NCBI GenBank assembly: GCA_964035545.1
Contig: OZ037773.1
Location: 4,617,751 to 4,681,750 of the forward strand
Origin: Bugula neritina
Taxonomy: Eukaryota > Animalia > Bryozoa
DNA length: 64,000 nucleotides
Direction: 5' to 3'
Shown here one piece after another: positions 3,604-43,738 of the stretch (its first letter is position 1; every line of letters starts with the position of its first letter). Below the pieces are notes generated by a model. It worked only from the letters and a program-made list of their open reading frames with translations, did not search any database and was not told where the DNA came from. The position numbers were made by a program, and so were the translations under genes.

Positions 3604-4660
3604 ATGAGAGTTGTTGCTGTATTTTTGATTTCTATGATAGTCATCAGCACAATGGGTAAGTTGATATTTAGCTGTGACATTAAAAACAACGAAATATGTT
3701 TTATATATTATATGTATAGATACCATAAATATCATACTATATATTGCCCCATTGATTTGTTTTGGAAAACGTTCAGTGAGTTTTCAGTAATGGCTTTGTT
3801 TTCTCAAATATTACTTATAGTTACATAAATTGTTGATCATTATTTTATTAGGTACTAGCACTTTCTCAGTACTTTATATTTCAAAAAGTTAATTTTTAAA
3901 GTACAGAGAATTGCAATTCTAGCTATATAATGTAAGTCTGCCCATTTATACAGGCTTCTCATGTTGTATATAAATTATATAAACTGAGGAACTAAAGCAA
4001 AATCATATAAAGAAATTGCTGCGCCAAATCTTTTTATTACTCCAATGTACTTATAGGATGATAGTGTCTATAAATTCACAAAAAAAAGTTGCAATTAAAA
4101 TTCGGGTCAAAAATCAAGGCTAATTTTATTATTTTGGTACCTAATTTTATAGCAAATAGCTGCAGCTCTTATATGGCAACTAGTTATTTAATCAAATTCA
4201 ATCTTTATATTGATTTTAAAAAAAATAAAGTTATGCTTTGGCCTAAAGTTAAGTGTAACTGGTAACCATTTTATTTGGCATATAAATATTAAAAGCACCA
4301 ATTTATCTACAAATATAGCAACTTGTGCAAACTCAAAGTTATGTAAGAAAAAATATGCATTTAATTTTTTTTTTGCAAATTGTATACAGTAACAACTGTT
4401 ATAGGCTATAGTTATCTAAACTGCTATATTGTCTTATACCTCTTCCATTATTGGTATATATAATTAACGCAGATGAGTTATTTACAATATTATGAAAACT
4501 ATTAAATAAACCTGTTTTATCTCTTTTCACAGCTAAGATAGCAGAGGGTTTTAGTTGGAAAACTGCCGCGTGCAGAGCAACTTGCAAGGCTTCTTGTCTA
4601 GTAATAGGATTCACCAAGTATGGCTGCGACGGCAGCAAATGTAAATGCTACAAAGACTAA
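3604..4660 (+). CDS. Secreted 6-Cys defensin-like (CS-alpha-beta) peptide, gene 1
   Basis: Exons 3604-3655 + 4533-4660 (phase 1, GT-AG): MRVVAVFLISMIVISTMAKIAEG|FSWKTAACRATCKASCLVIGFTKYGCDGSKCKCYKD*. Cys pattern C-x3-C-x3-C-x9-C-x4-C-x-C; cationic. Confidence 0.85.
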
Positions 4661-6680: not shown

Positions 6681-7231
6681 ATGAAGGTCCTGGTAATGTT
6701 TCTGATTGCCATGATTATGAGTATTGCATTGGGTAAGTTGATATTTAATTTATATTGTATATGAAGTGTGTGAGTTTTATCTGTATTAACAAACTTACAC
6801 AGTTAGCTGTTGTTTGAAGTAATATATTCAATAAATTTTATCTCAAATCTTTGGTTATGCTTTTAGAGTTATCTACCTCCCTTAATGCATAAATACTTGT
6901 GTAAAATTATTGCTGCCATTGGGAATCGAACCCGAGTCTACTGGCTTGCAAGCAAGTGTGCTACCATTACACCACGGAGGCTACTGGAGAAACAGAACAC
7001 TACAACTTGTAATATATGCATCAACTGCAATGCTTTAATCACGTGACTTAGCATCAAACAAATACATTTCATAATTTTGTCATTACTTTTCATTTCTTAT
7101 TAGGTTTTGGTTCAATCTGTGGCCATGGGTGTGTGGCAAATAAAGTGATATACAAGACGTATTGCAAAGACAGAGGCTTCCTTAAATATAAATGTCCATG
7201 TCCGTGCAAAAAATGTACATGCTTCAACTAA
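6681..7231 (+). CDS. Secreted 8-Cys defensin-like peptide, gene 2
   Basis: Exons 6681-6732 + 7104-7231: MKVLVMFLIAMIMSIALG FGSICGHGCVANKVIYKTYCKDRGFLKYKCPCPCKKCTCFN*. TATA at ~5628, exon-1 donor at ~5676, AATAAA at ~7391. Confidence 0.8.
6913..7003 (-). mobile_element. tRNA-derived repeat (SINE-like) in intron 2 of gene 2
   Basis: Minus strand has an A box TGGTGTAATGG and B box GGTTCGATTCC with an imperfect cloverleaf. A related copy lies at ~54652-54745. Confidence 0.55.
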
Positions 7232-8867: not shown

Positions 8868-11800
8868 AGTATATATAAACACACTTTTATTTTTACTATT
8901 TTTGCCTCAATAATACCTTTACAGACTTTAATTGAAAGTCATATTTTGTCTATATTTCTTGTGATTATTGATTGAATAATTGAGAAAAAAAGACATCTAG
9001 AGACTTGGTCTTTATTCAGCTACATTAACAATATAGACAGTCAAAAACATTGGTACGTGCATGCTACTGATCTATAACTTATAGATGCATCAATACAATG
9101 CTGTTATTTAAAGTTTAACATGTTCTAGAACAAACTATGCAACCGGCTGGTCCTTAAACAGCGTAATTTTAAAAGACAACTATGGCTAATAAGTTTTATT
9201 TACTCTTTAGCTACTTTCTTTAAGCCATTAATATGGACATTGACTATGTATAAATCTTATCAAATGCATTGTACATTAAAATGTATTTTATAAATTATTC
9301 GCACTAAAATACCCACTTAAAACTCCCAATTTGTCTAATAATGATTTCACAATTGTTACATTGCCGGGTATAAAATATTGCGAAGTAGTTCCAATGATAG
9401 GATAAATGTATTATTTATAAAATATGATGATAATGTCAAAATACAAACAAGTGAATGCAGTACATTGTACAGTCAAACAACAACTGATGAGCTCGTGATG
9501 GTGATGCACACATATTGGTTAGTCATGGTGCCATACTGAATGACACGTATGAAAACAACATATAATAAAACATACAAAATTAAAAACATATACATTTATA
9601 AATTGGCAATAGGATGAAACTTATATTCTATATTTCAAAATATTATTTTGATAACTGTTCATGTACAAATTAATATATCAGTGTATAAGCAAATAGGTTA
9701 TATTATCGGTTGCTAATTGAAATACAAATTGCATGTTTGGAAAGTGTTATTAGCACTAAAACGCAGTTATTATCTATGGAGTTAAAGTATATTTTTAAAA
9801 CTGAGGTTATTGATTCTATTCAAATAACTTTCAACACATATTTGTAATTTACGAGGAGGGGGAGAATATTTGCCAACCTCTAAAGTGAATGATAAGTCTA
9901 TAAATTGTTTTAATTCCAGTTACTGTAAATATTTGTCGTAATATGCTTTGATCCACAACAAAAGATAGTTTAATAATTGAAAACATATGTTGAAATGAGC
10001 CAAATAAAAACAATTGAATATACAAATATATTCAAAGTTTTAAAATGCAAATCAGAAAAAGGAAACTCTGTTTTGTTCTCCTGGGAAAAAAAATTTGAAA
10101 GTATGTTATGTTGAAAATTTAGTAATCAATATTTGTGTCATAATGTTATTAATTGCAAGTGATATATGTAAAATCAACTGGTATAATCGCAGTTTTTTAC
10201 CGAAACAGGACAATTTTAGTAAATTTATAAATTTAAGTATATTTAACTTTTGCAGTAATGAAATTATAAACTTCAATTCACTATATATATAGTTTTTTGA
10301 AGTTTTCAAAATGTTAACATTCTTTAGTGTCAGTTCATAAAATATTGATTGAACTATATTTCACTTGCCTATAATAGCCTAACTTGTTTTGTGCTATGCT
10401 TTTCATTTTGTACAAGCAGCAAATATTTATTGTGAACTTGATAGCATGAAATTTTAGGATGTTGTATTTGCTAGAAAAGTCTTATATAATTATAGCTAAA
10501 AATATAAATTCTAATCTTTTGCAGCCCGATCGATGGTAGAGTGTATGACTCAGTGCAGTGTTCTCCACAGTCATTGTCAGTCTGGGTTTTTTGAATCAGC
10601 AAACAAAACCTGCCATCTTTTCAATGTGTCTATGGCGCAGGTGGAAGAAGAACTTTCTGGGGAGACAACTCATTTCATGAAAATAAATTCAACTGGTATG
10701 ATATAATTAAACAGCAGAATCAATAAAATTATTGAGGCTAAAAGTGTGCCATCATTATTTTTGTGTGTATGTGTGTGTGTGTGTGTGCGTGTGCGTGTGC
10801 GTGTGCGTGTGCGTGTGCGTGTGCGTGTGCGTGTGCCTGTGTGCCTGTGTGCATTCAGGCATAAATAACACATCATATCTTATTCTTTATATGCATAATG
10901 AAAAACAGCAAAAATAACTCAAGATGAATCAAAATTCGGCATCACAAAAAGAAGTATAACGGCATGCTTTCTCAGTAGCAGACGCAGGCAAATTAAAAGT
11001 TAGCGATCGAAGCTTGAACTGTGTTTGCCGTTTGCGCAATTGCAGCTGAGCAATTAGCAAAGAGACATGCAATATTTGCTTTTTAGCCCTAAATTAATTT
11101 TCCAAGATTGTGATAAGAAGTTCTATAGGTATAGTTCAAAGTAAAGCCAGATATGTTACTTTGGCTTCAGAAATTAAAGAATTGTGATTTTTTCCAATTA
11201 ATGCACAAAGTATTATATATCCTACTTAAGTATAATCTTTAAGCTGGCACCTTTATATTATATTCACAATTAAAATGACAGTTATTCTTAAAAATATCTT
11301 ATTTCTCAAGAGTACAAAGCAAACAGTTAAAGGAAAGCTTAAAATGTATTTTACTAATTGTATTTATTTTATTTTCAGGTGAAGGCGATTTCTTAGATCA
11401 GCTATATTCCGATGTGCCAACATCTTACCACCAACATAAAAGATTTAGCCTTCCATCTTGTTTAGCTCTTTGCTCATTCAATCAGTCATGCGTTGCAGTG
11501 TCATATGACAAAGATAAATTAATCTGTTTTCTTTCTGATGAACTGAAAGTGTTGAACAACTCAGAACAGACCAGTAAACTCTGTTTTGTTAAGAAGATAT
11601 TTGCAGAAGATGTGATAGTTTATGGATTCTCCACAAATCTTGCCAAAGGTGAAAATATTTCGCTGTATATAAGACAATGTTTTATAAGTTAATCACCATT
11701 TTTCAATAACCTTGTTACAGATGCTTTATATATATATGATTTTGCAGAACTGGGAAAAAACAAATTGGTTAAATTATTTAGAAAGTTGGAATATAATATG

Positions 11801-12744: not shown

Positions 12745-12809
12745 GGCCATGGTACTCTGTTCTGTGCTGATGAGGGGACAAATCCCGAAACAGCTGCTGT
12801 CCACAGATT

Positions 12810-12890
<81 letters not shown>

Positions 12891-13215
12891 GTATATCTAT
12901 ATATATATGTAGTTGTTTGTTATTTCTAGCTTAGATTATTCACAATTTGCTTGTGTCTGTTCATTTTATATAGTGAACAATGACCGACTAGCCAATGTTA
13001 GAGTAACAGTTGGTAAAACTGACACCAACTTTGCCAATCCACCAGAAAATGAGATCTGTGACTACCTTCCTGGACGACCACCAGCAGTTATATTTATGGT
13101 TACATGTCATACTAGAATGTATGGTAGATTCGTTAGAGTAACAGCTGTAGAAATAAATGATTTTTTCAACATTTATGAATTAGATATTCATGGACAAGAA
13201 CCCTTTCGTGATTGA
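7913..13215 (+). CDS. Secreted PAN/Apple-PAN/Apple-F-type lectin (fucolectin domain) protein, ~347 aa
   Basis: Exons 7913-8057, 10525-10695, 11379-11648, 11892-12107, 12974-13215, all with phase-1 GT-AG introns. Signal peptide [10 protein letters not shown]; two C-x3-C-x5/6-C...C PAN units; F-type lectin motifs [44 protein letters not shown]. Confidence 0.85.
8655..8900. repeat. Inverted-repeat flanks around two (TA)n arrays
   Basis: GTAGAAATAAAAGTGTGTTTATAT at ~8656 and its reverse complement (one mismatch) at ~8873-8896 enclose (TA)n - 55 bp - (TA)n. Confidence 0.7.
10763..10850. repeat. (TG)n/(GTGTGC)n microsatellite
   Basis: Visible tandem repeat. Confidence 0.95.
12205..12910. repeat. 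Compound (CA)n/(TA)n/(TATG)n/(TGCGTG)n microsatellite block in lectin intron 4
   Basis: Visible repeats. This block is the source of the spurious YI/CV-repeat ORFs. Confidence 0.95.
12761..12807 (+). ncRNA. Type I hammerhead ribozyme (retrozyme fragment 12742-12815)
   Basis: Stem I TCTGTG/CACAGA, core CTGATGA, stem II GGGA-caaa-TCCC, GAAA, stem III CAG-ctg-CTG (contains palindromic CAGCTG), GTC cleavage triplet ending at 12801. Confidence 0.85.
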
Positions 13216-13756
13216 AATTCTGATGATGTTGTACATTATTAAAATGTTTGTGTGTAACATAATATATTTGCGCGTGGGTGTGTGGGTTCGTGGGTGTGTG
13301 GGCACGTGGGTGCGTGGGTGCGTAGGTTCATGTGTGCGTGTCATTCAAGTTTTAATAATATTCACTAAACTATGATCAACAAAATAAATAGATATATCGA
13401 CAATAACCTAATTTTTCTCGTGCAAATGTAACACAAAAATGACTAAATTAGATTTTTAGTTTCTAAAATTGGCCTTTGTCATTGAGTAGTCGCATACATT
13501 CTATCTTATTCAACAGTAGATTTGTAACTGAAGTTTTAGTTGAAGCAAGAGAACAAAGTAGTTATGCAAACGGGTGTTCATTCTTTTCCCAAATTTAGTT
13601 ATAAGACTTGAAATTCTGAAAACTCGTTGCATCTTAATTAGGGACAAAACATGTTCATAATTATGTTAGCTAGGGTTCACCCATCATTTTTTCTATAAAC
13701 CATCATAACTGCTTAAAAAAACCATCTTTACATCTATATATTATAGTAGTTTATTA

Positions 13757-14200: not shown

Positions 14201-15492
14201 ACTATTTATTTCCATCAAATTGCTTGCATATTATATTCTTGCTTTAATCATCAAATACTATTTAAGCTGTGTTTTTCTACAAGCATTATTCGTTATTGTA
14301 ATGTAATACGGAATATCATTTTTCACACTTTTTATTACCTGTGTCTCTTGTGAGTGGCAACTCTTTCCTTGATAAAATGTCATTAGCATATTATATAGCT
14401 TTTCAATGTTGTTTTATATATATTTCCTGTTATAAATATATCATATATATTTTATTTGGAAGAAAACATAGCTTTATAATATTATTTTACCAGGGTGTTG
14501 CCTACTATAATATATATATATTATACAGATATATTAGCTCCAACATACCACATACTCCTTTAAAACATATTCTGGAATTATAATATAATTTGTGATACCT
14601 GTCAAAAACAATCCTGCCAATGCTGTTTCTACTATAGTGTCATGTGATTCAAATACAACACGTCCATCTGCTTTTGTATTGTAGTTATTTTAAAAACTTA
14701 GCATAGTTGCTTTACATGAAACAATTATTATATAAAATATTACCATATCCTGCCACCCGATCAGGAACTGCAGGTGAAGAAATTAGGTGGACAAAGATCA
14801 CATTGATCTCTTAGAAAAAATGAAAAGTAATAATAGAGCATAATTTTGAAAATAATCATGCAATTTTGAAATCACAAGTTGCATGTCAAGCAATTAACTT
14901 ATTTGTGGACTTATTATTAGTGAACATATTTTTTGCAGTGTTGAAATACTTTCAGTGTTTATTATACCAAAAATTGATCTCATGCAGTCATGTCAGCTTT
15001 TATTTAGAGAACACATCTTTAAACAAATTTTAATGCAGAATATATTCTTTCCAATTTATCTGCATCTACAAGTTTTCTTGTTTTTTAAATGTTTTTTTAA
15101 TACAATCAGTTCAAGTAGAAGCACCAAAGTTGATATTGAACAACCTTTTTCTAAATAAATATTGTTGACTCCAAAAAATTGTTTCATCATTTGTCAGTTT
15201 TCAGCCAAATGTGTTCATCTTAGCAAAAAAGTTATAACTAATAAGTTTCTAAATATAGCCACAAAAGTTATACACAAGAACATAACTTGTCTGGATGAAT
15301 TATAACTATTATAGGTAGCAATTAGCCAAATGTTCTTTTTCAATAAATATTTAAAATGATTAAAATATGCGAATTTTTTCGAGTATTGCATATTTTTATT
15401 GAAAGTATTAAGTTTTTGTATAATTGTGCATAAATCAGTATATCAACTATAATAACAAACTATAAATTTATAGAAAGTTTAGATACATCAAT

Positions 15493-16845
<1,353 letters not shown>

Positions 16846-18027
16846 AATTCTGATGATGTTGTACATTATTGAAATGTTTGTGTGTAACATAATATATTTG
16901 CGCGTGGGTGTGTGGGTTCGTGGGTGCGTGGGTGCGTAGGTTCATGTGTGCGCGTCATTCAAGTTTTAATAATATTCACTAAATTATGATCAACAAAATA
17001 AATAGATATCTCGACAATAACCTAATTTTTCTCGTGCAAATGTAACACAGAAGTGACAAAATTAGATTTCTAGTTTCTAAAATTGGCCTTTGTCATTGAG
17101 TAGTCGCATACATTCTACCTTATTTAGCAGTAGATTTGTAACTGAAGTTCTAGTTGAAGCAAGAGAACAAAGTAGTTATGCAAACTGCTGTTCATTCTTT
17201 TCTCAAATTTAGTTATAAGAGTTGAAACTCTGAAAACTTGTTGAATCCTAATTCCGGACAAAACATGTTCGCAATTATGTTAGCTAGGGTTCACCCATCA
17301 TTTTCCATAAATCATCATAACTGCTTAAAAAGCCATCTTTACATCCATATATTATAGTATTTCATGTTAATAATGTTTATAATATATAATATACATGTGC
17401 AATTTAGAAAGTGCTGATAAATATTCATTTGAATAAATTTTTATATATAATTTGAATCATTTTTGTACTGTTTGTTAATTAATTTCTGGGTAAATCTAAT
17501 AAAGGTTTGGCAGTTTACTAAAATAATATATATCCAAAGTTCAAATTTAATGATTTAATCAAAGTTGAGAGAAGTATAACCTTAGGTATGTAGGCTTTTA
17601 TTGGTCAAATGTTAGTTGCAATCTAAATAATAACAAATTGAGGGGTAACATTCATAACACCCATGCAAAGCACAACAATGTAATAGAACTAAGATTAACA
17701 GTTTTTTATTTATTATTATTTATGTTGTGTAAATATAGCAGCTAAAGAAATCTAAACTTGTGGTATTGTATGTTTTTAGCCTATATTATATAACTGTTGG
17801 TTAAAACTTCTTATATATCTGAAATGACACACGTGACTTATTCATATACAAGATTTGATTTGCTTTATTGCATGCTACACAAAATATACTAAAAAACAGA
17901 AAAACTATTTTTCAGAATTTTTTTTTATTAAATAACAACATTGAGAGCAGAGGTCCAGTTTAGGTAAAAATAGGTTAACTATTTTTACAAATTTCCCAAA
18001 TATGTCATCATGTAATTAATACTCATA

Positions 18028-18428
18028 TTATCTTCTTCCTTTGCAAAAATTTTTGCAAATAACTCTGAACTTAGGAAGTCTATAAGCGGCCACTGTCACT
18101 GAACCTGTGAAATGTTGACAAATTGCTTAAATTATTGCAACAGCATTATATATTGAAACTTTGCAAATTTTGTGCTTTTATTCTTGTAGCCAATAACAGA
18201 TATAGCAAATAAATACTTAAGTAGTAATATTTATCATGCATGTTTAGTAAGTGTTTGTACATTATATAAAGCTGTTTGTATTGTTTATGATTGTTTATAT
18301 TTATCCTTCGAAAAGATTTCAAGTTGAAATAAATCTTTCTATTTCTATAAATTTAACATTGGAATTTCCTACTTACCTAATGAAGTTATGGCAATCATCA
18401 TGATGAGAAACAAAGCAACAACTTTCAT
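18028..18428 (-). CDS. Secreted short 2-Cys cationic peptide (truncated defensin-like; possibly a pseudogene)
   Basis: Exons 18428-18377 + 18104-18028: MKVVALFLIMMIAITSLGSVTVAAYRLPKFRVICKNFCKGRR*. Confidence 0.6.
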
Positions 18429-20245: not shown

Positions 20246-21072
20246 GCAAGTTCCTTAATTACAGCAAATATACCAAGTAATTAACATGATATAAAAGATG
20301 CATATACACTTCATTTTAATTATTTTTGTAAAAAATTGGTGTATTTTGCTGAAATTTATTCTTAAAATCTGTTTTCTTATAATAGCTCTTAAACATTTTC
20401 TGCATTTAAATTTTTGTTTTTTCTAAAAAATACAGCTATATATTGTAAATAATGATATTTACTATTTTTAAAAAATATGATGATTTTGTATATGAAAAAA
20501 ATAGCCATGAGTGTGTGAGGTGTTCATATAATCCTTCTCTTTTAAATTATTCTAATGCTACATTGTGAATGTACTTGATGAAGTATACAAGCATTCACAT
20601 TAGATCATTCAAATTAATAGTTTGACTAAATACTTTGTTTGACACATTTTGCGAGCAGATCGGAGTATTTACATGCAGCATGCTTGATTTTGCTTTATAT
20701 TTGATTTTATATATATAGTTGCATAGTAGGCAAATATTAGGTTGCAATATGGGCGTTGCTGGGTTACGCCATTATACAAATTTGTAGAGAAAAGCACATT
20801 TTTACCATCTGACATGCACTGCGAAATGCATGCTGACTTTTATACTTATGTTGCTCTCAATATATTTTTTCTAAGAAATGATATAATGTTTTTCTGTTCT
20901 TTTCATCTGTTTCATTGTAGAGATCATATCAATTACAAGCATATCACAAAATCAGAGCTCAAAAATTTATTTTTTCAAAGATACTTAAATGATAAATAAC
21001 AGTTATCAAAAACGAATTATAATTTAAGTGAAGGTCGTGTCCAGGTCAAGAGTTGGCAGTAAAGAAAGCTGG

Positions 21073-21330
21073 TTAGTAGTATTTGCCATAGTGTTTGTTT
21101 CCATGATACCTGTAGCTCTTTCTATAATATGATTTTCTGTAACCTCCAGCCTCGGCTACAGAAGCTGTTAAAATATGCAATAACTTCGTTATTTACCGAG
21201 TCAGTAAAGCATCGATTATTCATTATTGAAAAAACTGTCAATTGGTAATCCTATAATATAGAACATTTGTCAACTTACCCAATGCACTGAAAGCAATCAT
21301 AGCAATTACAGCTACAGCAAGAACCTTCAT
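21073..21330 (-). CDS. Secreted Tyr/Lys/Arg-rich cysteine-free peptide (copy A)
   Basis: Exons 21330-21279 + 21164-21073: MKVLAVAVIAMIAFSALASVAEA|GGYRKSYYRKSYRYHGNKHYGKYY*. Exon 1 ~22004-22060, TATA at ~22080. Confidence 0.85.
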
Positions 21331-23376
21331 GTTGATTTTGTTTCTGCATAAATTACAAAGCATGATGTAATTTTAAAAATATAAACAAGATTATACTTTT
21401 AAGACACAATGCTACAACTTTTAACAGACAAACTATGATAAAAGGCAATTGCGAAAAAACACTGTGCAAACAAGAGAGTTTGCTAGTACATATTATTATG
21501 TGGCTATTTAAACATTTTTATGAAATAAATTACATTTGATAAGTATAAACAAATATTTACCAATTTAATTCTTAGTCATAAGACTAACATTTATGTAGAA
21601 GATTATATGTGCATCCTTTATTGATTAGCAATGCATGTCTGTTAAATTAATATTATTTTATTCCTATATATAGTTGCTTTGCTGCTAAGTATGGGCTGCG
21701 ATGGCTTGTTAGAGTATTTTAAAAGATAGCTCAAAAACGTCTGTATCCATCAAAGGGTTCATGTCAAAATGTATTTTGTATCGAATTTGCACATAGTCTT
21801 AGAATTTTTGAATGATGTTGTGCAAATAATAAATAATTTGTTAAGTATGCAACTAATATTTATGGTTTTAGTTCATTTAAAAAAGCACTTCATATTATAA
21901 AATATACATTCAGTGGTGGTATAAAAACATATGTGACTAGCAATATATTATAACTGTATAAGCTATATATAGGATATAATATATTAGTTGGTAAAGTAAC
22001 GCACCTGTAAATCTTGATCTGTAGTAAACAGTTGTAAGAGTATGAACACTATTGAAGTAAAAAGATATGCCGCCGCTCTTATATATACTGTTTCAAGTCA
22101 TCTTCTAAACTTGAAGTGTTACATAGCGCTTTGTCTCAATTGTCATTATTTTGAAGTCGATTGAACTGGCTATTAACTTTAATCGCTTTTTAAAAAGATA
22201 CAATAATGGTGGTTTTTTTGTTTCCACTTTTCCCCTAGATATAAAAAGTGTTCAGCACTTCCATCAATGCTGGCTGACACCTAGAGATCAAAATAACAAT
22301 AACACATTATTTAATACAGCTCTCAGGGTATAATGTTTAAATGATACAATCGTTGATGAATTGACATTATATTATCAAGGTCCTTGTTGACCTACAACTT
22401 CCAAGGCCAAGTATTGGTTAGGAAGTTTGAATAGACTCAACAAATTACTTACAGTAGACGATCTTCAAGCAGTGGAATATATAATTTTAATAAAATTGCT
22501 ATATGTATACTTGCAGTATTCATTATTCAAATTAGATCTTTTGTTATTATATGTCTATAATTATTAATTAATTTCAAATTTTGAAACTGCATTTAAATTA
22601 AAACAAAAAAATCTAAATAGCATTTTCTAAAAGTATTGCTATTTTAAGCGGAACTCTTATGCTCATGCTTTTTGAGTTTGCAAATACAACTACAAATCAC
22701 ATGGGAAACAAGTCTTAAGTAATAAAACAAATAAAACTATAGAATGAATTTTGAGAAAATGAAATAAATCTATTGAATTGGATTGCATTTTGTCATATAT
22801 ACATTATGACCTGTAAATACTGTTTACAAGAAAACATTACAGCTGTGCATTGCATTCTTGTTGACATCTTTTGCATAAACAACTGCTTTTGTTATGTGGT
22901 TCATTAAAAACACATTGTCATTATGTCAAGTTGATTGCCATTGCAATTTACCATAAACTAGAATGACTTGACAAAAAATTGGGTGAAGACTGCATTGCCT
23001 GGTCTATTGTGTATTTTAATATACCAATATAGAAAATCCTATTACATTGCAAATAATTATAAGAGAGCAGAGATAAAAAATTTTTAATATTGAAAAAAAA
23101 GTTAATTATTCTTTAAGTCATGATATGTAATATTATTTGGCCAAAAATTCATTATACATCAACCAAAAGGGTGTGAGCAGGTGCGTGGTGCAACTCTTTG
23201 TTGAAACATTTTTATTGAGGAATTATTAATCAAAATAATTCACACATTACTGAATATTGTGGTAAAAAAGTTAACTGCTCGTCATAATTGCGTTAATTTT
23301 ATTGTAAAAAGAGCTCGAGTGACACTGCGCAAACAACTGAAACACGTACTAGCTATAACTAGTTTACACACTTTTA

Positions 23377-23422
<46 letters not shown>

Positions 23423-23572
23423 CAATCTGTGGACAGTTTGTCCCCTTGTCAGCACAGAACAGAGTACCATGGCCCACACCTTCGCAATAGTAGAAACTTA
23501 TGTTTCTACTAAAGCATATTTAAAAGGTGTGTAAACTCCAGCCAGAGTGCTCAAGTGACTCTAGGGGACACC
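23423..23572 (-). mobile_element. Partial, degenerate retrozyme copy next to (TA)n
   Basis: Matches the 271-bp unit. The hammerhead is internally deleted (CTGACAAGGGGACAAACTGTCC). Confidence 0.8.
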
Positions 23573-24744
23573 TATATATATATACAGCACATATATTCCA
23601 GTAAAAAGAATCTGCTCCATGTTCTCATACTGGTATTGAATTTAAAATTAAATTTAAATTAAAATTAAATTTAAGATTATAATATAATTAGCAATAAGCA
23701 AATAAAAATAACACAAACATAAAGTTGCAAAAACATCTAGCATTGCAGAATTTATTTTTAAAAAGTATTAGAGGTCAGTTGCATAACTATTTAATTTTAA
23801 TTTGCAGACTTTAGTTTTTTAGATTTAGATATTCACCAACATATTTTTCTCTAAAAAATAATGAATTTGCTTGAAGTTTTCTGTTAATAAAAAAGAATAC
23901 ATAGAGGCTGCAGAAAGAGTTTAAAAATCACATATACTATAATAGTGACAAAGGTTGCTATATAATAAAGATGACTCATCTTAATTCCCAGGTTGCTACA
24001 AATATGCACTTCCCATGATGCAACTGCAAAAAATAAGTCTGCAACAAGAACAAGAAGTTACATAAGAGCAATATCTTGTGAAAGTAAACTACATTGGTTG
24101 CTTTTTGAGGACATTCCGTATAACCAGGGTATAAAAGTTTTATGCATAATCATGCAGGCACATTATTATTAAAAAATACATAATAATACACCAGGATATT
24201 TATAATTACAATCTCAAGATCAACAGTAAAATCAGTTTTTTTTCTAAGTGCTAAACAATACGTGGAAACACACTATTCTATTGTAATTAACAAAAAATGG
24301 AGATTATTTTTTGCGTTATTTGAAAAAATATAATCTACGCAATGCCTATAATCATTGCATTGCTGCAGCTGTAGAAAAATCATGAGTTTCGAAATGAAAT
24401 ATTCTTTTATAGCATTTTAAATGACTCGAAGATATTGCATAAATGTGTTTATCATATTATTATCATATGACAAACAATCTATAACAGTTTGTTTCCTGTT
24501 ATCTAAAAAATAATTCTCAAAAAAATGTTAGTTAGGCATGCAATTAAAAATTTTTTTGAAAAAGATATACAATTGAAATAACTGCAACATTGAAAAATAA
24601 AACTGTTTTGGTTTCTTATGCTATAGTATAAAAAATTGCAGCTTTAACCAACTTTAAAATTATTTGCTTATATAATTAGACATTTAACAAATCTTTGGTT
24701 TAAATTGTAAATTTTTACTGGAAGCTTTTTAAGCAAAAAGCTAT

Positions 24745-25143
24745 AAATAACGAAATAGATACATTGTTATAGCTGGCAACGAATGCTTAGGTAATCAAAA
24801 CCTGCTGAGTCTGTTTAAACTGTTGAGTCACAGCTCAACCTTGTAAAACAGCTTAAAAAAAAATTTTTACAAAATATAATATTATATGTAAAGTCAATTT
24901 ATCAATAACTGTATCAGTTAAACATCCCTGGGAAGAGTGTTATGAAATAACGAGATAGGTACATTGTTATTGCTGGCCACAAATGCTTAGGTAATCAAAA
25001 CTTGCTGAATCTGTTTAAACTGTTGAGTCACAGCTCAACCTTGCAAAACCTTAAAAAAAGTTCTATACAAGAAATATCATGTAAAGTCAATTTATCAATA
25101 ACTCTGTCAGTTAAACATCCCTGGGAAGAGTGTTATGAAATAA
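24745..25143 (+). repeat. Direct tandem duplication (~195-bp unit x2)
   Basis: ATGCTTAGGTAATCAAAAC...GTTGAGTCACAGCTCAACC...CATCCCTGGGAAGAGTGTTATGAAATAA occurs twice. Confidence 0.85.
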
Positions 25144-26005
25144 TGTGATATGGTTTTAATATATGTAGCTGTCAACACCAATAGAAACTCGGAACATTTT
25201 TATATATATAAAAAATGCAAGCAATAAATCACCATTACTTCATCTTTTAAAAAACAATTAAATGTAAAAGCCAATCAGTTTCAAAATAATGACAATTGAA
25301 ACAAAGTGCTACGTAACACTTCAAGTTTAGAAGATGACTTGAAACAGTATATATAAGAGCAGCAGCATGTCTTTTTACTTCAATAGTGTTCATACTCTTA
25401 CAACTGTTTACTACAGATCAAGATTTACAGGTGCGTTACTTCACCAGCTAATATAATTTAGATATATAGTCTAATTTATAAGCCTTATAATTATGCAAAG
25501 AATATAGCAAGAGTTTCAATAATAATGTTGAAATACATATTTAGTATATTGTAGTATAAAAATTTTAAACAGCGTGTAGAATTTCATTTTCAAGAAGTAT
25601 AGATATTTTGGAATTATATTTCGAAATGTTTTAAAGAGTCAACAGTCTGGAATCAGCATTAATATGATTCTTATATCAATTTAGCAAAGCAACTAATAAT
25701 ATTATTTAACTTTCTAATAATAATAGAATTATACATTTTAATCAATGGAAGTAAAGAAACATATATAAATGCTTTAGTGTTTGTTGCTGAGCTACCTTAA
25801 GTTGAATAGCTGTTTATATGCAACAAGTTTTAGCAAAAGTTTTAATATAGAAATAGTTTAGATAGCCATGCATTTAGCCGTAGAGAAGTGTTTAAAGATT
25901 TATTCATGATTTTTAATATAATATATGCTGTGGTATTTCTACTAGATTCATAATATTTATAAAATGGTGTCATTTCTTATGATTATTCACAGAAACATTA
26001 TCAAC

Positions 26006-26238
26006 ATGAAGGTTCTTGCTGTTGCTGTAATTGCCATGATTGCTTTCAGTGCACTGGGTGAGTGAAAATGTTCTATGATCAACAGTTTAACCACATTTAT
26101 ATTTAGTACTCAGTACATAACGCAGTTATATTGCATATTTTAACAGCTTCTGTAGCAGAGGCTGGAGGTTACAGAAAATCATATTATAGAAAGAGCTACA
26201 GGTATCACGGAAACAAGCACTATGGCAAATACTACTAA
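26006..26238 (+). CDS. Secreted Tyr/Lys/Arg-rich cysteine-free peptide (copy B; protein identical to copy A)
   Basis: Exons 26006-26057 + 26147-26238. TATA at ~25348; exon-1 donor at 25430. Confidence 0.85.
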
Positions 26239-27016: not shown

Positions 27017-27292
27017 AATCTGTGGACAGCAGCTGTTTCGGGATTTGTCCCCTCATCAGCACAGAACAGAGTACCATGGCCCACGCCTTCGCAATAGTAA
27101 AACTTATAGTTTTACTAAAGCATATTTAAAAGGTGTGTAAACTCAAGCCAGAGTGCTCAAGTGACTCTAGGGGTCACCTAGGAGTCACGAGCATTGCAAA
27201 ATGCTAGCAGCTTGAGTTTGTGACTATGGTGAGAGTGCTCAATCATTTAATGTCATTGCTGAGCATTAAATGAGAGCGTAATATCTCAATCT
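27013..27292 (-). mobile_element. Full-length retrozyme-like monomer with intact type I hammerhead (27019-27065)
   Basis: Unit begins and ends with CAGATTGAGA (terminal redundancy just 3' of the cleavage site). The core CTGATGA...GAAA...GTC is intact, and the unit abuts (TA)n. Confidence 0.85.
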
Positions 27293-27830: not shown

Positions 27831-28996
27831 TTATCCAATTGGAAAATACCCTCTTCTGCTGCATGTACACTTGCTGCCATTGCATACACCCCTGGTGAAG
27901 AATTTTGAAATGCAAACAGGCTTGCAAAACAATCTACATGTAGTAGTGGCCTTCTCACCTTCTGCTACTGCAGCTGTAAGAAGAAATACAAATAGTTTAA
28001 CTAATAGCTGTGCTGATATAGTAACCTAGACTGTCTGTCTTTAAATGCTCTGATTAGAAGAGGTATAACATACTATATAACCATATTATTATATTCCTGG
28101 ATAAATTGGTGAACCTGATAACAATACACAAACTACATTGGATCTTTATAGCTATAAGTCATACTACTATATATATCTGTTAATGTATATAAATATTCTA
28201 TTCAGTTGAGCCATTGACAGATCAATATAAATATTAAACCTAATCGTAACTGATTTAATTATGAACAAAAACTTATGTAACTATACAATTGAAGACCTCA
28301 AAGGAAAAATGGCATATGTCCAATTTTGCGAATTTTCACAAATTGAAAATTAAAATTTGGAAACTTGCAACTGCTATCGATATGAATCAATTCTAACCAA
28401 ATTTGATATTATGGTTTTTGAACATGTTTCAAACAACTATAGACAAAAAGAAATTTGACCAAGTTTACATAAAATACACAATTTGCTAGTCTAAAAATAT
28501 TTCACATGCGCACCGTCATTGGTCAATTGTTATCACATGACTGGACATAAGTTATTTTTCTTTTGTGATGACTGGACATAGGTTATTTTTCTTTTGTGAT
28601 GACTGGACATAGGTCTTTGTTGCTTTGGGGTGGGTTTCAAATCCAGCCTTAAAACCATGGACAAAATTTGTTTTTCTCTTTGATAATTTTATGACTAAAA
28701 CTTTAATACTTGAGCTATCCAAGGGAAGAAAAATCTCATTTTTTTTTAAAATGGACAAATGTCGTTTTTCTTTTGAGGTCTTCAATTATTATTTGAGAAA
28801 ACAAGGTATAATTACTAAAAATCATTAAAACGTTCGCAAAGTTCTTTATAATAACGCAACATGCACTATATTACAGAATTTTGAAGTTGATCATAATCCA
28901 AATAAAAAATAATGTTTTTATCTCACAGGAAAACTTTAACTTACCCATTTGGCTGATGAGTATCATAGCAATCACAATTACAGCAACAAGCCTCAT
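27831..28996 (-). CDS. Secreted 6-Cys defensin-like peptide (paralogue of gene 1)
   Basis: Exons 28996-28945 + 27973-27831: MRLVAVIVIAMILISQMAAVAEG|EKATTTCRLFCKPVCISKFFTRGVCNGSKCTCSRRGYFPIG*. Cys spacing is the same as in gene 1. Confidence 0.85.
28291..28783. mobile_element. MITE with ~35-bp TIRs and internal 31-bp tandem repeat
   Basis: GAAGACCTCAAAGGAAAAATGGCATATGTCCA / TGGACAAATGTCGTTTTTCTTTTGAGGTCTTC, with AATT on both sides (possible AWWT TSD, Sola1-like). Three GACTGGACATA units at 28539-28611. Confidence 0.7.
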
Positions 28997-32659: not shown

Positions 32660-33582
32660 CTATAAAGCATCTTTTTTCCAGCATTTACATATTCCTCCAC
32701 GACTACATTTTGGCTTAGAGTAAACTTTGCCCGGGCACTGGCTCTTAGTGCAGGTCTTGCGACAAAGCCATCTGAAAAGACCAGCATCTGCTGCTGAGGC
32801 TGTAAAAAAATATAATTAGCATTCATAACTCTGTCAACAGATCTTCATGTTTATTTTCCTGGTGTTAAATGAGTCATTTCATGTTGATTGTAAGCAAGCC
32901 AGCATTTTAAAAAAAGAAACCAAAAACTATGCTTCCAAAATTTATGAAAGTTCTAATTGGGGTGCTAATTTCACGGAGTGCTATATAGTTACACCAAAAA
33001 AATATTAAAGCAAATCTCTGCACCCTGAAACGCCTTCGGCTGTTGACAAAAAAATTAAAGCATTAAATTTATTTATTGAACAAGACTGGCTATTTACTTA
33101 TCACAAATTGTAACTCTAAAATTGCTATATTTTGTATTTTGTTTAAAATATCAGAACCTGTAATGTTGCAGTTTTAGAATTATTGCAGAAGAGCTAATTA
33201 AAGTGAAGCCTTTTTTTATTCAACTAACATTCAAATCAGAATTATGTATTGATATATTTTTTGTAATTCATCAAAAAATAATGTTTAATGCAGTCTATAA
33301 GTAAAATGAAGGAATTCAAAAAGTGCTTTAAAATTAGAAATAATATGACACTATTATATATGGAAGTAATATAAACAATGATTAAATATATTATGTAAGG
33401 TTTTTAAAGCTATTATAAGATTTCAGGCTAACATAACTGTATGAAAGGGAGATAATTATCTATTAATGATATGGTTTTATAATGAGGGTTGACAAAACAG
33501 ACAATAATTTTGTTGTCTTTGGTAACTCACCCAATAAGCCGATGACTAGCATTTTAATGGCAAGTAAAACAAGAACCCTCAT
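32660..33582 (-). CDS. Secreted 6-Cys defensin-like peptide
   Basis: Exons 33582-33531 + 32799-32660: MRVLVLLAIKMLVIGLLASAADA|GLFRWLCRKTCTKSQCPGKVYSKPKCSRGGICKCWKKDAL*. Cys pattern C-x3-C-x4-C-x9-C-x5-C-x-C; TATA at ~34120. Confidence 0.85.
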
Positions 33583-35012: not shown

Positions 35013-37117
35013 AAAACTAGAAAGATGTGCTATGAAGTATGCAGGGTACCTCATCAACTTTATTATTTCAAACACACTAGCTACCCTGGTTTAGTTTTTA
35101 TTCCTACTGCAGTACAAGAATTTGGTTAAGGTTAAATATTTATATCCCTTCTATTCATTTTCTCATACATTGCAAGTAAACAAAGTGCATTATGCTGGGA
35201 ATATGCTATTATATAGAATATTACCCAAAATCTCAAAATGCATGTAGCCGAGATGTGTGTTAGCCGTAAGGTTTACTTTTTTCGACTTGCAGATGAGACC
35301 CTCAACAAATTTCTTATTGACCAATTTGGTGACCCCATTCACCATATCTCTTTTATTCATACAATAATTGGCACCAGCATTTCCTTGCCATCTCATAATT
35401 TCTGACTTTAGTATTGTAACCAATAATAAAATAAAGTAAAAAACCTACATATCACCGAATGCGTGTGTGTGTGTGCGTGTATAACTGTGTTCATTATCAT
35501 ATATGAGATGCAGCAACTATAATATCATGCTATATAATACAAATAGGCATGTAACTATATGCAAGATTGAAAAATAGCATCTAAACAGTAAAAAAATAAA
35601 CATGGCAATCTTTAATTTAAGCTTGAAAATCACAGCAATTAATTACCAATCGATATAATGTATTATTTTTAGTTTCATGTGTATACATCTGAATAACATG
35701 ACAATAAAGTTTACTATTTATGGTATATATTTGGTAATTTCTTAAAGTTTTCTAAACCAAACATTTAAATTAATAAAACTCTCATTCTAAACTTAAAATA
35801 AGATGTGATACAATAAATTGTAAATATCCTAATAACACTATTTTATTGTGAAGGGTTTATGATTGCTTGTAATAACAGTTCTATGTCATATCAGATATTT
35901 TACCTTCAGAATTTCAAAGAGAACCAATCTGCGTCTATAAGAATAAAATTCTCTACACTATAAAAGCTGATGCATTCTCTGTATATAAAGTAGAAAGAAC
36001 TGGTGTATGCATTGGTATATTGTTTATATTCTGATATATGTCAGGTAATGCTAGGTTTGTAAGGGGTTTAGCATCTTTAAATTTGTTGATACCAAAAATG
36101 GTTTTGGCTGCTCCGTAGTTGGTTAAATGCAACATAAGTGACTATATTGATTTGAATACATTCTATAACATGTCTAAGAGAATTGCAGAAAGAATTTAGG
36201 AGTTATGTTATTCAGGGTACGTAATTTTACCTAAAGACAAAAAACAAATAGAGAGTACAACTCCTTGTAATTGATAGAAATAAATAATGCGAAAACTCCT
36301 TTATAATAATGCTGCCAATTTATGCCAGCTTATTATAATTGAATCATAGAAATTCTGAAAGCAATATATTCTGCATTGTGTCTGGTGTCTTATTGCATAT
36401 TATGCGCTTCCTGTTACATTAGAATGCCTTTTATTTATAAAACAACAATTTTAGGTAATGAAAAAAAGCTGTTTTATTGTGAAAAAAAGAAATTACAGAA
36501 AAAGTTAATCAGCAACTTGAACAAAGTTACTTTTAAAAATTGGTTTAAAAAACAAGCATTTCTTTCAGAGTTTTTTAAAGTAAAGAATGAAGGTCGTTTC
36601 CAAGTCAAAAATAGGCAGCCAAGCAAGTTAGTTAATTACCGGCTTTCCATGTACCGATCTCAGATCGATCTCGGTGAGATCGATCCATGGAAAGACGCCA
36701 AAGATCGATCTCCGTCGTTCTGAGCTGGTCGGTCTGTGGAGCTCGAACTCAGATCGATCTCATGTCAATAAGACCATGGAAAGACGCCAGATCGATCTGA
36801 GAAGTAGAAAAAGACTGCTCGCTACAATGTTGTCTGCTAATAAAAATGATAACTTGTTGATAATTACTAAGCAAAGTATTAAATAGTTATGATAGTCACC
36901 TTTTCAGATACCAAAACTTTGACTTTCAGCACAATGATTAAGAAAACTCAATTATATGCAGTAGAAGGCAAAAAAAATGCGAGAATTTAAATTGAATTTA
37001 AATGACTATTAAAACTTAGTTTCATTAGCTATTTTCTTTGTAATTTTAAGCCTAACAGTCCTGTAAGTTTATTAATAATCTGCAAGACAGCCATTAATTT
37101 TATATAAGCTGTCTATA

Positions 37118-40100
37118 TAGTGGGGGTGCCAACATGCAAAAATGGGCGGGTGGAGCACATCAATACTAACCTTTGTTGCTATATATCACTGAAAAGCCAA
37201 CATTCTACTGATCTCAGATCTGCAAGTACCTTTTTTGTATCTGGGGGGGTTCTCCCGTGAGAGGGGTGGATATACAGGGGTTCAGCATTTTTCAAGGGGG
37301 GACTATGGAACTCTAAATATTAAATTTTTTGAGTAGTTTAGGTTTGAAATTAAAAATATTTTCAAGAAAGGCTGTACACATATGAAACTTTCTCTAACAA
37401 AATTTTTGACCAAAAATAAAAAAGTGGGCGGAGCCTATAATATGACAAACTACTTTTTTGCATATACCTGATATTCTCTAAACTGCTACTTTTCTGTTCT
37501 AGCATTTAGAATGTTGATTTTTGGTATGAAAATACCCTATTGTGTTCTAATAATGTTCTCCAGTTTTCATTACATTCTGAACTATATAACTTCTTTCCCA
37601 ACCATAACAAATAAAAAAAATAAAACGGGAGTTATCTCCTCCGTTATAAATTATTGCATTTCTACCCAATAATATTGCTCTTTGTTGATAGAAACAACAT
37701 CAGCATAATAAAAATGTATTCTTAGTGTATTTATATTAGCTTATTAGCTTAGTGTATTTATGTTAGCTCATTTTGAATAGAAAATTTGAATAATTCCCCT
37801 TTCACCCAAATTTGAGATTTTTCATCTCTTGAAATTGCCTAATACCCTTGACCTTGACATCATGTAAAGGCAGCATGCTTCAGTATTCTCAGTTCAAGAA
37901 AATGTGAATCATCACATATCATGGTAAGTAAAATCTTATTTTTCTAATATAATAAAACATGTGTTTAAAGATGTCTATTTTATAATCCAACTTTTGATTT
38001 AATTTAGTCTGCTATTGGCTAAAAATACTAATGCTAAAATTCCAAGCATCTAAATTCTAATGCATACTAAAACTTTCTGCTTTGTCTTCTGTTATGCTAG
38101 CATGTATTTACAATCTATGGTGATGTAATTACAGAATTTTGCCAGTGCCAAAGAATTCCTGTACCATTACAGACCAAGCAAATGTGTTTATTGCTGTCAA
38201 GTAACTGATGAAAAAGTGGTTAAAGCCAAGAATATAAGTACAGTGCAAGCAACACTAACTGCAAATGAATTAAGTCAGGTTAGTAGTAAATATCCACCTT
38301 TTCATATTTGTTTTAGTAAACTGCAGCATAAATATTTATTATATATTTAACTTTATAATTCCTTCATATATAAGCCTGTTCATAACCACATTCTAGGTAA
38401 AAAAGAATGAAGATGAAATTGTATATCACAAATCTTGCTATACACACCGCAGAAGAAAGGTGTCAACTCCCACAGTGTCTACAGAACAAGCAGATTCAGA
38501 TCACTCATTTTCCCCAGTAAAGAAAACACGGAGTCAGCAGTATTTGTCATTTGATAATAAATTATGTGTGTTCTGTCAGTCACAAACTTGGAGAAAAGGC
38601 AACCTGGTGGCTTTCTCAACAGACAAAGCTAATTTTAAAATAGAAGAAACTATTGAACAATGCAGCAATCAAGTAATCCGAGGGAGACTGCTTAACATTG
38701 ACCTTGTTGCAGCGGAGGTAAAATATCACAAAAAGTGCTATACTAACTTCATCTATGAAGCAAAATTAAATAAATATTGCCCTTCTACCAGTGGCGGTAA
38801 GAAAAGCTGTGTTCAAGATCCAATTGAAGAAATTTTTGAAGAAATTCGAATTGAGCTAGAACAGGGTAGAGCTTTTAGTGAAGAAGAAATTATCAACAGA
38901 TATCGTGTTTTAACAGATGACAATGAAAGAAGGAGCTACAGCATCATGAGATCGTTCAAATCACAATTTAGTGACAGGGTTTCAGTAATTGATCTTGGAA
39001 AAAATGAAAAAATAATTTTGCATAGCAAATTGAAAGTTCATGATATAATCAATTCATCATATTCATCTAAGATTAAACCACCTAAACAGACTACGGAAGC
39101 AGATAGCATAAAAGAAATATCACATATAATTCGCAATGACATAATAAATGCCTGGAAACAAACAGAAACCTTCAACATATGCTTAGAGAGCTTACAGAGT
39201 GTGATCCCAAATAGTCTCAGGTTATTTCTTGATGAACTTGGAACAAAGGAGCCTGGGAAATCAGCTATTGCACATGATATCATTGCATCAGTGACAAACA
39301 AAATCACCCCTAAGCAAGTTTTATTGGGAACAGCAGTAAGACATTTAACTGGAAGCAAGCAGGTTATTGAGCAACTAAATAAACTAGGCCACAGTTGTTC
39401 ATATACGGAATTGTTGAGATTAGAAACAGCGGCAGCGGTTAATGAAATAAACTCGGCAGTTGATCGTGAAGTTGTGATTCCATCAAATATTCGACCAGCA
39501 TCACATGGCTTTATACAAGCAGCAGCAGACAATGATGATTTTTTGGAAGACACGGTTGACGGAAAGAATACAACACATGGCACCACAATGATTTTGATTC
39601 AGGAAGGTTCTATTGGAGCTGAAATGAAGACAATCATTAGAACTAGAGAAAGATCACTGAGCACTGATTCTTACAGACAGCTACAGGAAATCAAATTTAT
39701 TGAACTTAGAAAACCAAAAATCGATCCCCCAGCTTTTCGAGAATCTAGGGCAATCACAAAACTTAGTCAAGAAACATTGCTGAGTATGAAAAAGTCACTT
39801 GAGGATTCATGTAATCTAAACACAGCATGGCTATTGGCAAGACTTGCCCCAATCAAACTATTTCAATTGGATATAAATCCTTCTACACATAACTGCCCCA
39901 GCTGGAGTAGCTTTAATGTAAGAAATTTGGTTGCCACAGAAGATAATAAAAGATCAGTCATTGGGTATTGCCCAATGATTAATGCACCATCAACAGATCC
40001 ATCAACAATTTATACAATTCTTCTGCAGGTAAAGAAAACTATGGAAGTTTTAAAGCAGAAACATTCAGTAATTACATTTGACCAAGCTATCTACAAGATT

Positions 40101-43100: not shown

Positions 43101-43738
43101 AAAATAAGCCAATAAGCTAATATAAATACACTAAGAATACATTTTTATTATGCTGATGTTGTTTCTATCAACAAAGAGCAATATTATTGGGTAGAAATGC
43201 AATAATTTATAACGGAGGAGATAACTCCCGTTTTATGTTTTTTATTTGTTATGGTTGGGAAAGAAGTTATATAGTTCAGAATGTAATGGAAACTGGAGAG
43301 CATTATCAAAACACAATAGAGTATTTTCATACCAAAAATCAACATTCTAAATGCTAGAACAGAAAAGTAGCAGTTTAGAGAATACCAGGTATATGCAAAA
43401 AAGTAGTTTGTCGTCTTATAGGCTCCGCCCACTTTTTTATTTTTGGTCAAAAATTTTGTTAGAGAAAGTTTTATATGTGTACAGCCTTCCTTGAAAATAT
43501 TTTTAATGTCAAACCTAAACTATTCAGAAAATTAAATATTTAGAGTTCCATAGTCCCCCCTTGAAAAATGCTGAACCCCTGTATATCCACCCCTCTCACG
43601 AGAGAACCCCCCCAGATACAAAAAAGGTACTCGCAGATCTGAGATCAGTAGAATGTTGGCTTTGCAGTGATATATAGCAACAAAGGTTAGTATTGATGTG
43701 CTCTACCCGCCCATTTTTGCATGTTGGCACCCCCACTA
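37118..43738 (+). mobile_element. Academ (AcademX) DNA transposon, apparently full length
   Basis: TIRs of ~630 bp (37118-~37750 / ~43105-43738), 5'-TAG...CTA-3' termini, 3-bp TSD ATA (37115-37117, 43739-43741), one long ORF inside. Confidence 0.85.
37921..42785 (+). CDS. Academ transposase with XPG/FEN1-like nuclease and C-terminal Cys-rich finger, ~1511 aa
   Basis: Exons 37921-37923 (ATG|GTAAGT), 38135-38278 and 38397-42785 join in frame. Two CxxC...YHxxCY units; AADNDD, FDQAIY, GGFH, DQ.LEQ; IIDGM, VVFD, HDEADT, DTDV, HALTGCD; terminal Cys cluster. Confidence 0.85.

Follow-up and report, generated by a model that had tools for sequence, protein, structure and literature searches.

A tyrosine-rich cationic peptide encoded by a head-to-head gene pair in a family of predicted small secreted peptides of the bryozoan Bugula neritina

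A 64,000-nucleotide stretch of the Bugula neritina genome (assembly GCA_964035545.1, contig OZ037773.1, positions 4,617,751 to 4,681,750 of the forward strand; hereafter the window) contains a head-to-head pair of genes, copies A and B, which encode an identical 47-residue precursor of a 24-residue peptide rich in tyrosine, lysine and arginine. The substitutions that separate the two copies from one another and from a third paralog, C, show that this peptide is a real coding product under purifying selection. Through the exon that encodes most of their predicted signal peptide, both copies belong to a lineage-specific multigene family of small cationic secreted-type peptides. With moderate confidence, the peptide may best be viewed as a lineage-specific, disordered cationic secreted host-defence (antimicrobial) effector.

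The gene pair and its product

The gene models of the two copies were read from the sequence and comprise the following features (CDS, coding sequence; UTR, untranslated region).

21279-21330 and 21073-21164, minus strand: copy A CDS, 47-residue precursor
~22079-22088, minus strand: copy A TATA box, with non-coding exon 1 at ~22005-22058 (donor CAG/GTGCGT)
21279-21343, minus strand: copy A exon 2, 13 nt of 5'UTR, ATG at 21330, 17 codons plus 1 nt of signal peptide, donor G/GTAAGT
21073-21164, minus strand: copy A exon 3, end of the signal (A-SVAEA), 24-residue Tyr/Lys/Arg peptide and stop codon (21073-21075); acceptor ttttaacag/
20965-21072, minus strand: copy A 3'UTR, to an AATAAA signal ~102 nt past the stop
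26006-26057 and 26147-26238, plus strand: copy B CDS, 47-residue precursor
25348-25357, plus strand: copy B TATA box, with non-coding exon 1 at ~25378-25430
25993-26057, plus strand: copy B exon 2, 13 nt of 5'UTR, ATG at 26006, signal-peptide exon
26147-26238, plus strand: copy B exon 3, A-SVAEA, 24-residue peptide and stop codon
26239-26345, plus strand: copy B 3'UTR, AATAAA signals 97 and 104 nt past the stop

The strands of the two models agree with the head-to-head arrangement reported in a preliminary description of this DNA: the 5' ends face each other across ~3.3 kb. All introns are of the GT-AG type, the coding intron being in phase 1 after codon 17, and both copies retain canonical splice sites, a TATA box and poly(A) signals, transcription probably starting behind the TATA boxes. 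The stretch of first exon and TATA box is 96% identical between A and B over 70 nt and is enclosed, in each copy, by one arm of an inverted repeat (21975-22163 and 25272-25460; 189 nt, 93% complementary). The pair goes back to a gene of three exons that was recently duplicated, in inverted orientation, in the bryozoan genome.

The precursor consists of the predicted signal MKVLAVAVIAMIAFSAL-A-SVAEA followed by GGYRKSYYRKSYRYHGNKHYGKYY, and direct translation bears out the earlier statement that both copies specify it. The 24 residues comprise eight Tyr, four Lys, three Arg, two His, four Gly, two Ser and one Asn (Tyr 33%, Gly 17%, Lys+Arg 29%, His 8%) and no acidic residue, in accordance with the eight tyrosines, seven basic Lys/Arg residues, two histidines and lack of acidic residues first described. 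Cysteine is absent, as it is from the product of C, and so is proline; the open reading frame (ORF) ends right after ...GKYY. The peptide has a mass of ~3.1 kDa, a charge of +7, an isoelectric point (pI) of 10.0 and a grand average of hydropathy (GRAVY) of -2.2. By the A-x-A rule the mature peptide would start after AEA; cleavage after ...SALA, which would keep SVAEA on the peptide, is equally possible. AlphaFold2 models the peptide as disordered, with a predicted local distance difference test (pLDDT) value of 54 and no DSSP elements of secondary structure.

Copies A and B differ at six codons (6, 10, 17, 21, 38 and 41), every difference being synonymous and five of the six lying at third positions of the frame. 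Given 30 synonymous and 111 non-synonymous sites, six silent differences out of six would arise by chance with a probability of 9e-5 if mutation is uniform, rising to at most 6e-4 if kappa = 8. The synonymous divergence (6/30) is about that of the non-coding parts, namely the coding intron (114 nt in A and 89 nt in B, 86% identity where alignable), the upstream intron (~661 and 562 nt, 70% identity) and the 3'UTR (78% identity). Thus, the six silent and no replacement differences counted in the preliminary description, its diverged introns of unequal length and its proposal of purifying selection all stand, and the last is strengthened by paralog C, which lies in the same window together with a fourth, broken copy, D.

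48087-48463, plus strand: paralog C, intact, exon 2 at 48087-48151 (ATG at 48100) and exon 3 at 48330-48463
44043-44216, minus strand: paralog D exon 3, a His/Arg/Gly tract longer than that of C plus the Tyr core; its signal exon at ~44581-44652 is degenerate

The CDS of C (48100-48151 and 48330-48463) encodes a 61-residue precursor in which the same signal is followed by a His-Gly tract and this, in turn, by the core GYRKSYYRKGYNYGNKRYGRY, giving a product of 4.3 kDa. Between A/B and C the proportion of synonymous differences (pS) in the mature core is 0.85-0.93 and that of non-synonymous differences (pN) is 0.10 (pN/pS 0.11-0.12), so that the synonymous sites of the Tyr-rich core are nearly saturated and the Tyr, Lys and Arg positions are held; silent divergence of the signal exon is far lower (pS 0.23). 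It is because of this ratio against C, together with the six synonymous and zero non-synonymous differences between A and B, that the A/B peptide is considered to be a genuine product under purifying selection. The same observations bear on the possibility that the pair represents a chance ORF in a duplicated segment or recently silenced pseudogenes. Dead family members do exist (D and perhaps g3, described below); a non-functional pair is nonetheless highly improbable in view of the strictly silent, mostly third-position differences, the pN/pS of 0.11 and the preservation, in both copies, of splice sites, TATA box and poly(A) signals.

Exon 3 of D is broken just before its stop codon by a 7.4-kb element, and the rest of the D 3'UTR, which carries a motif common to A, B, C and D, is found at 36577-36636; because of this transposon insertion and the degenerate signal exon, D reads as a pseudogene. 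The element (36637-44042) has 25-nt terminal inverted repeats (GGCTTTCCATGTACCGATCTCAGAT) and a 1441-residue ORF (38460-42785) with no match in Pfam. A 9-nt unit in tandem array makes up the His-Gly tract in C (48350-48399, 5.6 copies) and in D (44104-44195, 10.2 copies), and A and B are without such a tract. Slippage of these arrays sets the length of the histidine-rich part in C and D, and the 16-codon difference between A/B and C therefore corresponds to repeat expansion or contraction.

The regions upstream of the two copies show several further features. In copy B an upstream ATG (25367), in or near non-coding exon 1, opens a short upstream ORF that ends within exon 2, and the matching site of copy A (22068 region) reads ATA. 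Just upstream of the copy B promoter lie two tandem copies of a ~190-nt direct repeat (24750-25130) with no counterpart at copy A, and the AP-1-like TGAGTCA sites upstream of copy B fall inside these two repeat copies. Immune-type promoter elements were considered as candidates and rejected, there being no kappaB-like site in the 600 nt before either copy and the remaining motif matches not being common to A and B. A dispersed ~150-nt repeat, found at ~12780-12830, 23420-23570, 27020-27110 and 51600-51650 and hence also in the A-B spacer, adjoins long (TA)n/(CA)n microsatellites.

A cluster of genes sharing a signal exon

Nine exons in the window share one layout: an initial ATG, a length of 17 codons plus 1 nt, and GTRAGT at the end.

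signal-exon starts: 3604 (+), 6681 (+), 15493 (+), 18428 (-), 21330 (-, copy A), 26006 (+, copy B), 28996 (-), 33582 (-) and 48100 (+, paralog C)

Ungapped nucleotide identity among these exons is 53-94%, as against 29% +/- 7% for random 52-mers from the window, for which the highest value in 5000 trials was 65%; the signal exon of A is 71% identical to those of both g1 and g7. The residues that follow the intron are also related (ASVAEA, AKIAEG, AAVAEG and ASAADA, of the types xSVAEA, xIAEG, xVAEG and xAADA), and short exons running to a stop codon open at downstream phase-1 acceptors with good polypyrimidine tracts. All of the intact products of this ~45-kb cluster have masses of 2.8-4.6 kDa and net charges of +5 to +10. 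The A/B pair sits directly between g4 and g7.

3604-4660, plus strand: g1, signal exon 3604-3655, exon 4533-4660; 6-Cys CS-alpha/beta-like peptide
6681-7231, plus strand: g2, signal exon 6681-6732, exon 7104-7231; 8-Cys cationic peptide
18028-18428, minus strand: g4, signal exon 18377-18428, exon 18028-18104; 24-residue 2-Cys cationic peptide, adjoining copy A
27831-28996, minus strand: g7, signal exon 28945-28996, exon 27831-27973; 6-Cys CS-alpha/beta-like peptide, adjoining copy B
32660-33582, minus strand: g8, signal exon 33531-33582, exon 32660-32799; 6-Cys peptide

The products of g2 and g4 have no family or PDB match. Those of g1, g7 and g8 display the cysteine spacing C-x3-C-x3/4-C-x9-C-x4/5-C-x-C and appear, from sequence and fold comparisons, to be defensin/alpha-KTx-like. 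The exon product of g1 matched the scorpion toxin BmBKTx1 (alpha-KTx 19.1; E = 0.0017), with which it has a ...SKCKCYK C-terminus in common, followed by termicin, alpha-KTx 18.1 and defensins; g7 gave weak matches to a scorpion defensin and to BmTX2, and a profile built from g1, g7 and g8 again matched alpha-KTx 19.1 and arthropod defensins. In Pfam, termicin (E = 8e-4) and gamma-thionin (E = 0.04) were matched, both below their gathering scores. The AlphaFold2 model of g1 (pLDDT 75) consists of one helix and a two-strand hairpin, and its Foldseek matches in the PDB were almost all CS-alpha/beta peptides (scorpion K+ toxins and defensins), the best being BmBKTx1 with a root-mean-square deviation of 1.1 A over 26 residues (probability 0.96, E = 0.16).

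The idea that the Tyr peptide descends from a defensin-like paralog through Cys (TGY) to Tyr (TAY) changes was also considered and is not supported. Its Tyr positions overlay the Cys positions of g1 by eye only, and the mature region is unalignable with the Cys-rich paralogs, codon and residue shuffles at the DNA level and with a matrix rewarding C-Y pairs giving z values of ~0 in a test that is itself weak, since the comparison of g7 with g8 fails as well.

Searches for relatives of the family were made exon by exon. The word search required at least 40 residues and was therefore run with the 43-residue exon 3 of C, the exon-3 product of A/B being of 29 residues; neither this query nor the Cys-rich exon of g7 retrieved any relative. 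No Pfam family was matched at E <= 0.01 by the exon-3 products of A and C, histatin and other antimicrobial models included, and the PDB held no relative of the Tyr peptide at E <= 10. A profile of A, B and C gave no match at E <= 1e-3 among 1.84 billion representative proteins; since a profile of 29 positions reaches significance for close relatives only, these results mean that close relatives are absent from those libraries. In two metagenome scans, one with peptide patterns and one with a DNA pattern of the signal exon conserved in the family, none of the 199 matches to the former was confirmed and the latter had no match. A literal search for the peptide motif in papers had no match, and an earlier description of the Tyr peptide or of bryozoan CS-alpha/beta peptides was not found in the literature.

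A chimeric duplication at 15099-17014 combines two copied segments: 15099-15651 derives from the 5' portion of g2 and contains the signal exon (g3, at 15493), and 16438-17014 derives from a lectin-like exon at 12813-13400. Splicing in phase 1 from the signal exon of g3 into the copied exon at 16565 would be possible, and g3 is perhaps a dead family member. An ORF at 11414-11692 encodes a PAN_1 domain. In the intron of g2, Rfam calls a tRNA at 6911-6981 on the minus strand (36.8 bits), which may be a tRNA-derived repeat; ARAGORN finds no tRNA in the window.

Flanking genes

The window is AT-rich (22-38% GC in 2-kb bins) and contains spliced genes, microsatellites and transposon remains. Exons of a cytochrome P450 gene lie at 51071-53748 on the minus strand (Pfam p450, E = 3e-19), and an intronless ORF for a rhodopsin-type G-protein-coupled receptor (Pfam 7tm_1) lies at 55704-56654 on the plus strand. 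The best named relative of the receptor is a Bugula neritina hypothetical protein, 71% identical over 80% of the query, and two JGI proteins are 67-78% identical to it. The sequence by itself thus points to a cheilostome bryozoan close to Bugula and not to human DNA, and Flustra does not fit because of its GC content of 39-40% (PMC13326412); exact look-up in a protein collection retrieved neither the receptor nor the 1441-residue ORF of the transposon. At 62101-63293 on the minus strand, exons resemble a Nudix-type hydrolase without a Pfam match.

Host defence, adhesion and other roles

A cationic peptide family built on one signal exon and including defensin-like members is the signature of host-defence effector loci, and it is because of this cluster context, with its defensin/alpha-KTx-like members, that an antimicrobial role of the Tyr peptide is favoured over an adhesive or sclerotising one. 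Generic features of cationic host-defence peptides, namely a secretory signal, fewer than 50 residues, a positive net charge and a clustered gene, are all present in A/B. In the family, one conserved signal exon is joined to 6-Cys, 8-Cys, 2-Cys and linear Tyr/His-rich cationic products. We infer expression, secretion, the cleavage site, antimicrobial activity and its mechanism along the following lines. In the case of A/B, a signal peptide of 18-23 residues would be cut off the 47-residue precursor on secretion, releasing the ~24-residue, 3.1-kDa, +7 peptide. With tyrosine as the sole source of hydrophobicity (GRAVY -2.2) and no amphipathic fold, the peptide is not a classical membrane-active antimicrobial, and it would act without membrane lysis: Lys and Arg would attach it to anionic surfaces of microbes or to anionic polymers, whereas stacking, hydrogen bonding or metal binding would fall to Tyr, and in C also to His, in the manner of histatin- or shepherin-type peptides.

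Histatins, shepherins and the nematode NLP/CNC peptides resemble the Tyr peptide in general terms in being short, hydrophilic, unstructured and cationic, with Tyr and His, and the GHGGHGGHGGH tract of paralog C is reminiscent of the Gly-His repeats seen in shepherins. The His content of histatins is far higher, and the NLP/CNC peptides consist of Gly-Tyr repeats with few basic residues; the nlp and cnc genes also form clusters that expand by duplication. Homology to any of these peptides is not claimed.

The nearest described analogue in architecture is the myticalin family of Mytilus, linear cationic Tyr-containing antimicrobial peptides with a conserved signal, a hypervariable mature part and a first exon confined to the 5'UTR (PMC5577615). 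Like the A/B family, the myticalins form a lophotrochozoan, taxonomically restricted multigene family with pseudogenized members (PMC5577615), in which a conserved signal precedes a short, hypervariable, cationic and sometimes Tyr-rich mature part, and the genes agree in having three exons, a 5'UTR-only exon 1, an intron just before the ATG and a phase-1 coding intron. On the other hand, a single exon encodes both signal and mature peptide of the myticalins, and a Lys-Arg site with an anionic propeptide follows at the C-terminus (PMC5577615), whereas in A/B an intron splits the signal and the peptide ends at the stop codon without an anionic extension. Furthermore, myticalins are rich in Pro, Arg and Tyr whereas the A/B peptide has no Pro, and the A/B signal is unrelated to the myticalin consensus MKGXXLLLLTIXXALCMIXECEG (PMC5577615).

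Several observations weigh against a host-defence role. The assignment of g1, g7 and g8 as defensin/alpha-KTx-like builds on sub-threshold sequence and fold scores, each of them weak, as is expected for 40-residue peptides, although all point one way; the C...CxxxC...C...CxC pattern and helix/hairpin fold of CS-alpha/beta defensins and short scorpion alpha-KTx toxins are found in g1, g7 and g8 only, and not in A/B or C. A shared signal exon denotes common descent and a common secretory route, not a common function. In the Tyr peptide itself, Tyr is the only hydrophobic residue and an amphipathic fold is lacking, and its composition is closer to that of the adhesive Mfp-5 than to that of most antimicrobial peptides. 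Lastly, kappaB-like sites are missing from the 600 nt before each copy, although this result of the promoter scan has little weight in either direction.

The likeness to mussel foot proteins raises the less probable but serious possibility that the peptide is adhesive, coacervating or sclerotising. Secreted by an attachment- or cuticle-forming epithelium and converted by tyrosinase to contain 3,4-dihydroxyphenylalanine (DOPA), it would prime surfaces, phase-separate or cross-link the chitin-protein cuticle as a convergent, minimal Mfp-5-like peptide, the His-Gly tract of C adding metal or quinone cross-linking. Mfp-5 contains 30 mol% Dopa, 21% Gly, 20% Lys and 27.7% cationic residues, and Mfp-3f contains 20% Dopa+Tyr, 25% Gly and 26% cationic residues (PMC9526746, PMC5132118). 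The Tyr peptide, with its 33% Tyr, 17% Gly, 29% Lys+Arg and 8% His, no acidic residue and pI of 10, is close to Mfp-5 and corresponds to the general composition of Mfp-3 and Mfp-5 (~20-30 mol% Tyr/DOPA, 20-25% Gly, 26-28% cationic residues and a basic pI). It shares with Mfp-5 and Mfp-3f a small, basic, disordered and (here predicted) secreted nature, almost no acidic residues, ~30% Tyr (DOPA in mussels), ~20% Gly, 26-29% Lys/Arg and YK, YY and GKY-type motifs; Mfp-3 is likewise a polymorphic family of many variants. The disorder predicted by AlphaFold2, the strict retention of Tyr positions between A/B and C despite saturated synonymous sites, and the general knowledge that the animal is sessile with a cuticle and rhizoids would also suit an adhesive role, and GK-16, a 16-mer from Mfp-5 with similar YK/YY motifs, coacervates and adheres, although only after conversion of Tyr to DOPA (PMC9526746). 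Since unmodified GK-16 shows no phase separation (PMC9526746), the adhesive reading depends wholly on a postulated Tyr modification, and the window contains no tyrosinase or peroxidase gene.

The mfp-3/mfp-5 likeness proposed in the preliminary description thus holds for composition, as measured against published values, and does not extend to membership, there being no homology in the Pfam, PDB, profile and word searches. The Tyr peptide comes from another phylum, shows no detectable sequence relation to any adhesive protein and has defensin-like paralogs; a literature search for bryozoan adhesive proteins found nothing specific. With 3.1 kDa (A/B) or 4.3 kDa (C) it lies below the 5-9 kDa of these foot proteins, and even Mfp-3, which at 5-7 kDa is the smallest mussel adhesive known, is twice as large as the A/B peptide (PMC5132118). 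Moreover, every other family member resembles a small cationic peptide of the defence or toxin type and not a structural protein. Host-defence and adhesive roles could, however, coexist in one peptide.

A further reading, quite improbable, is that of another bioactive peptide from the gland or cell type of the alpha-KTx-like paralogs, where it would serve as a deterrent or toxin component, as a carrier or packaging partner, or in the management of symbionts. It has its signal exon in common with peptides that find their nearest relatives of solved structure among K+ channel toxins, and the sequence-specific constraint would fit a defined molecular target; bryozoans, however, are to our knowledge not venomous, which counts against a toxin, and the peptide bears no receptor-ligand signs, with neither an amidation signal nor a KR/RR site flanking the conserved core. 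Bugula-type bryozoans are generally known to carry vertically transmitted bacterial symbionts, and aphid BCR and legume NCR peptides are precedents for symbiont management. Lineage-specific families of cysteine-rich secreted peptides serving symbiosis are indeed known (PMC3574423; PMC9515463).

It is also conceivable, albeit unlikely, that the secretory cassette of a defensin/alpha-KTx-like family was reused for a convergent minimal counterpart of Mfp-5, acting as an oxidized glue, coacervate former or cuticle cross-linker. If so, an immune-peptide family would have given rise to a biomaterial component, and no smaller natural adhesive peptide of the DOPA type would be known; the peptide might serve as an antimicrobial coating as well.

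Very little has been described of the gene-encoded defence peptides of bryozoans. The phylum goes unmentioned in a 2025 review of antimicrobial peptides from marine invertebrates (PMC12466427), and the sole mention found concerns big defensins in Flustra transcriptomes (PMC7203481). The present locus offers a whole family at once, with alpha-KTx/defensin-like, other cysteine-rich and cysteine-free Tyr/His-rich members on one signal exon, and illustrates how one secretory cassette may be joined to unrelated mature peptides. Taxonomically restricted cationic peptide families are of an already known kind; what is new here is a member of unusual composition. The peptide is short enough for synthesis and raises the questions of whether a non-amphipathic peptide that is one-third tyrosine can be antimicrobial and whether DOPA-type wet adhesion has arisen in a third sessile lophotrochozoan lineage, both of which its strict conservation and Mfp-5-like composition make directly testable.

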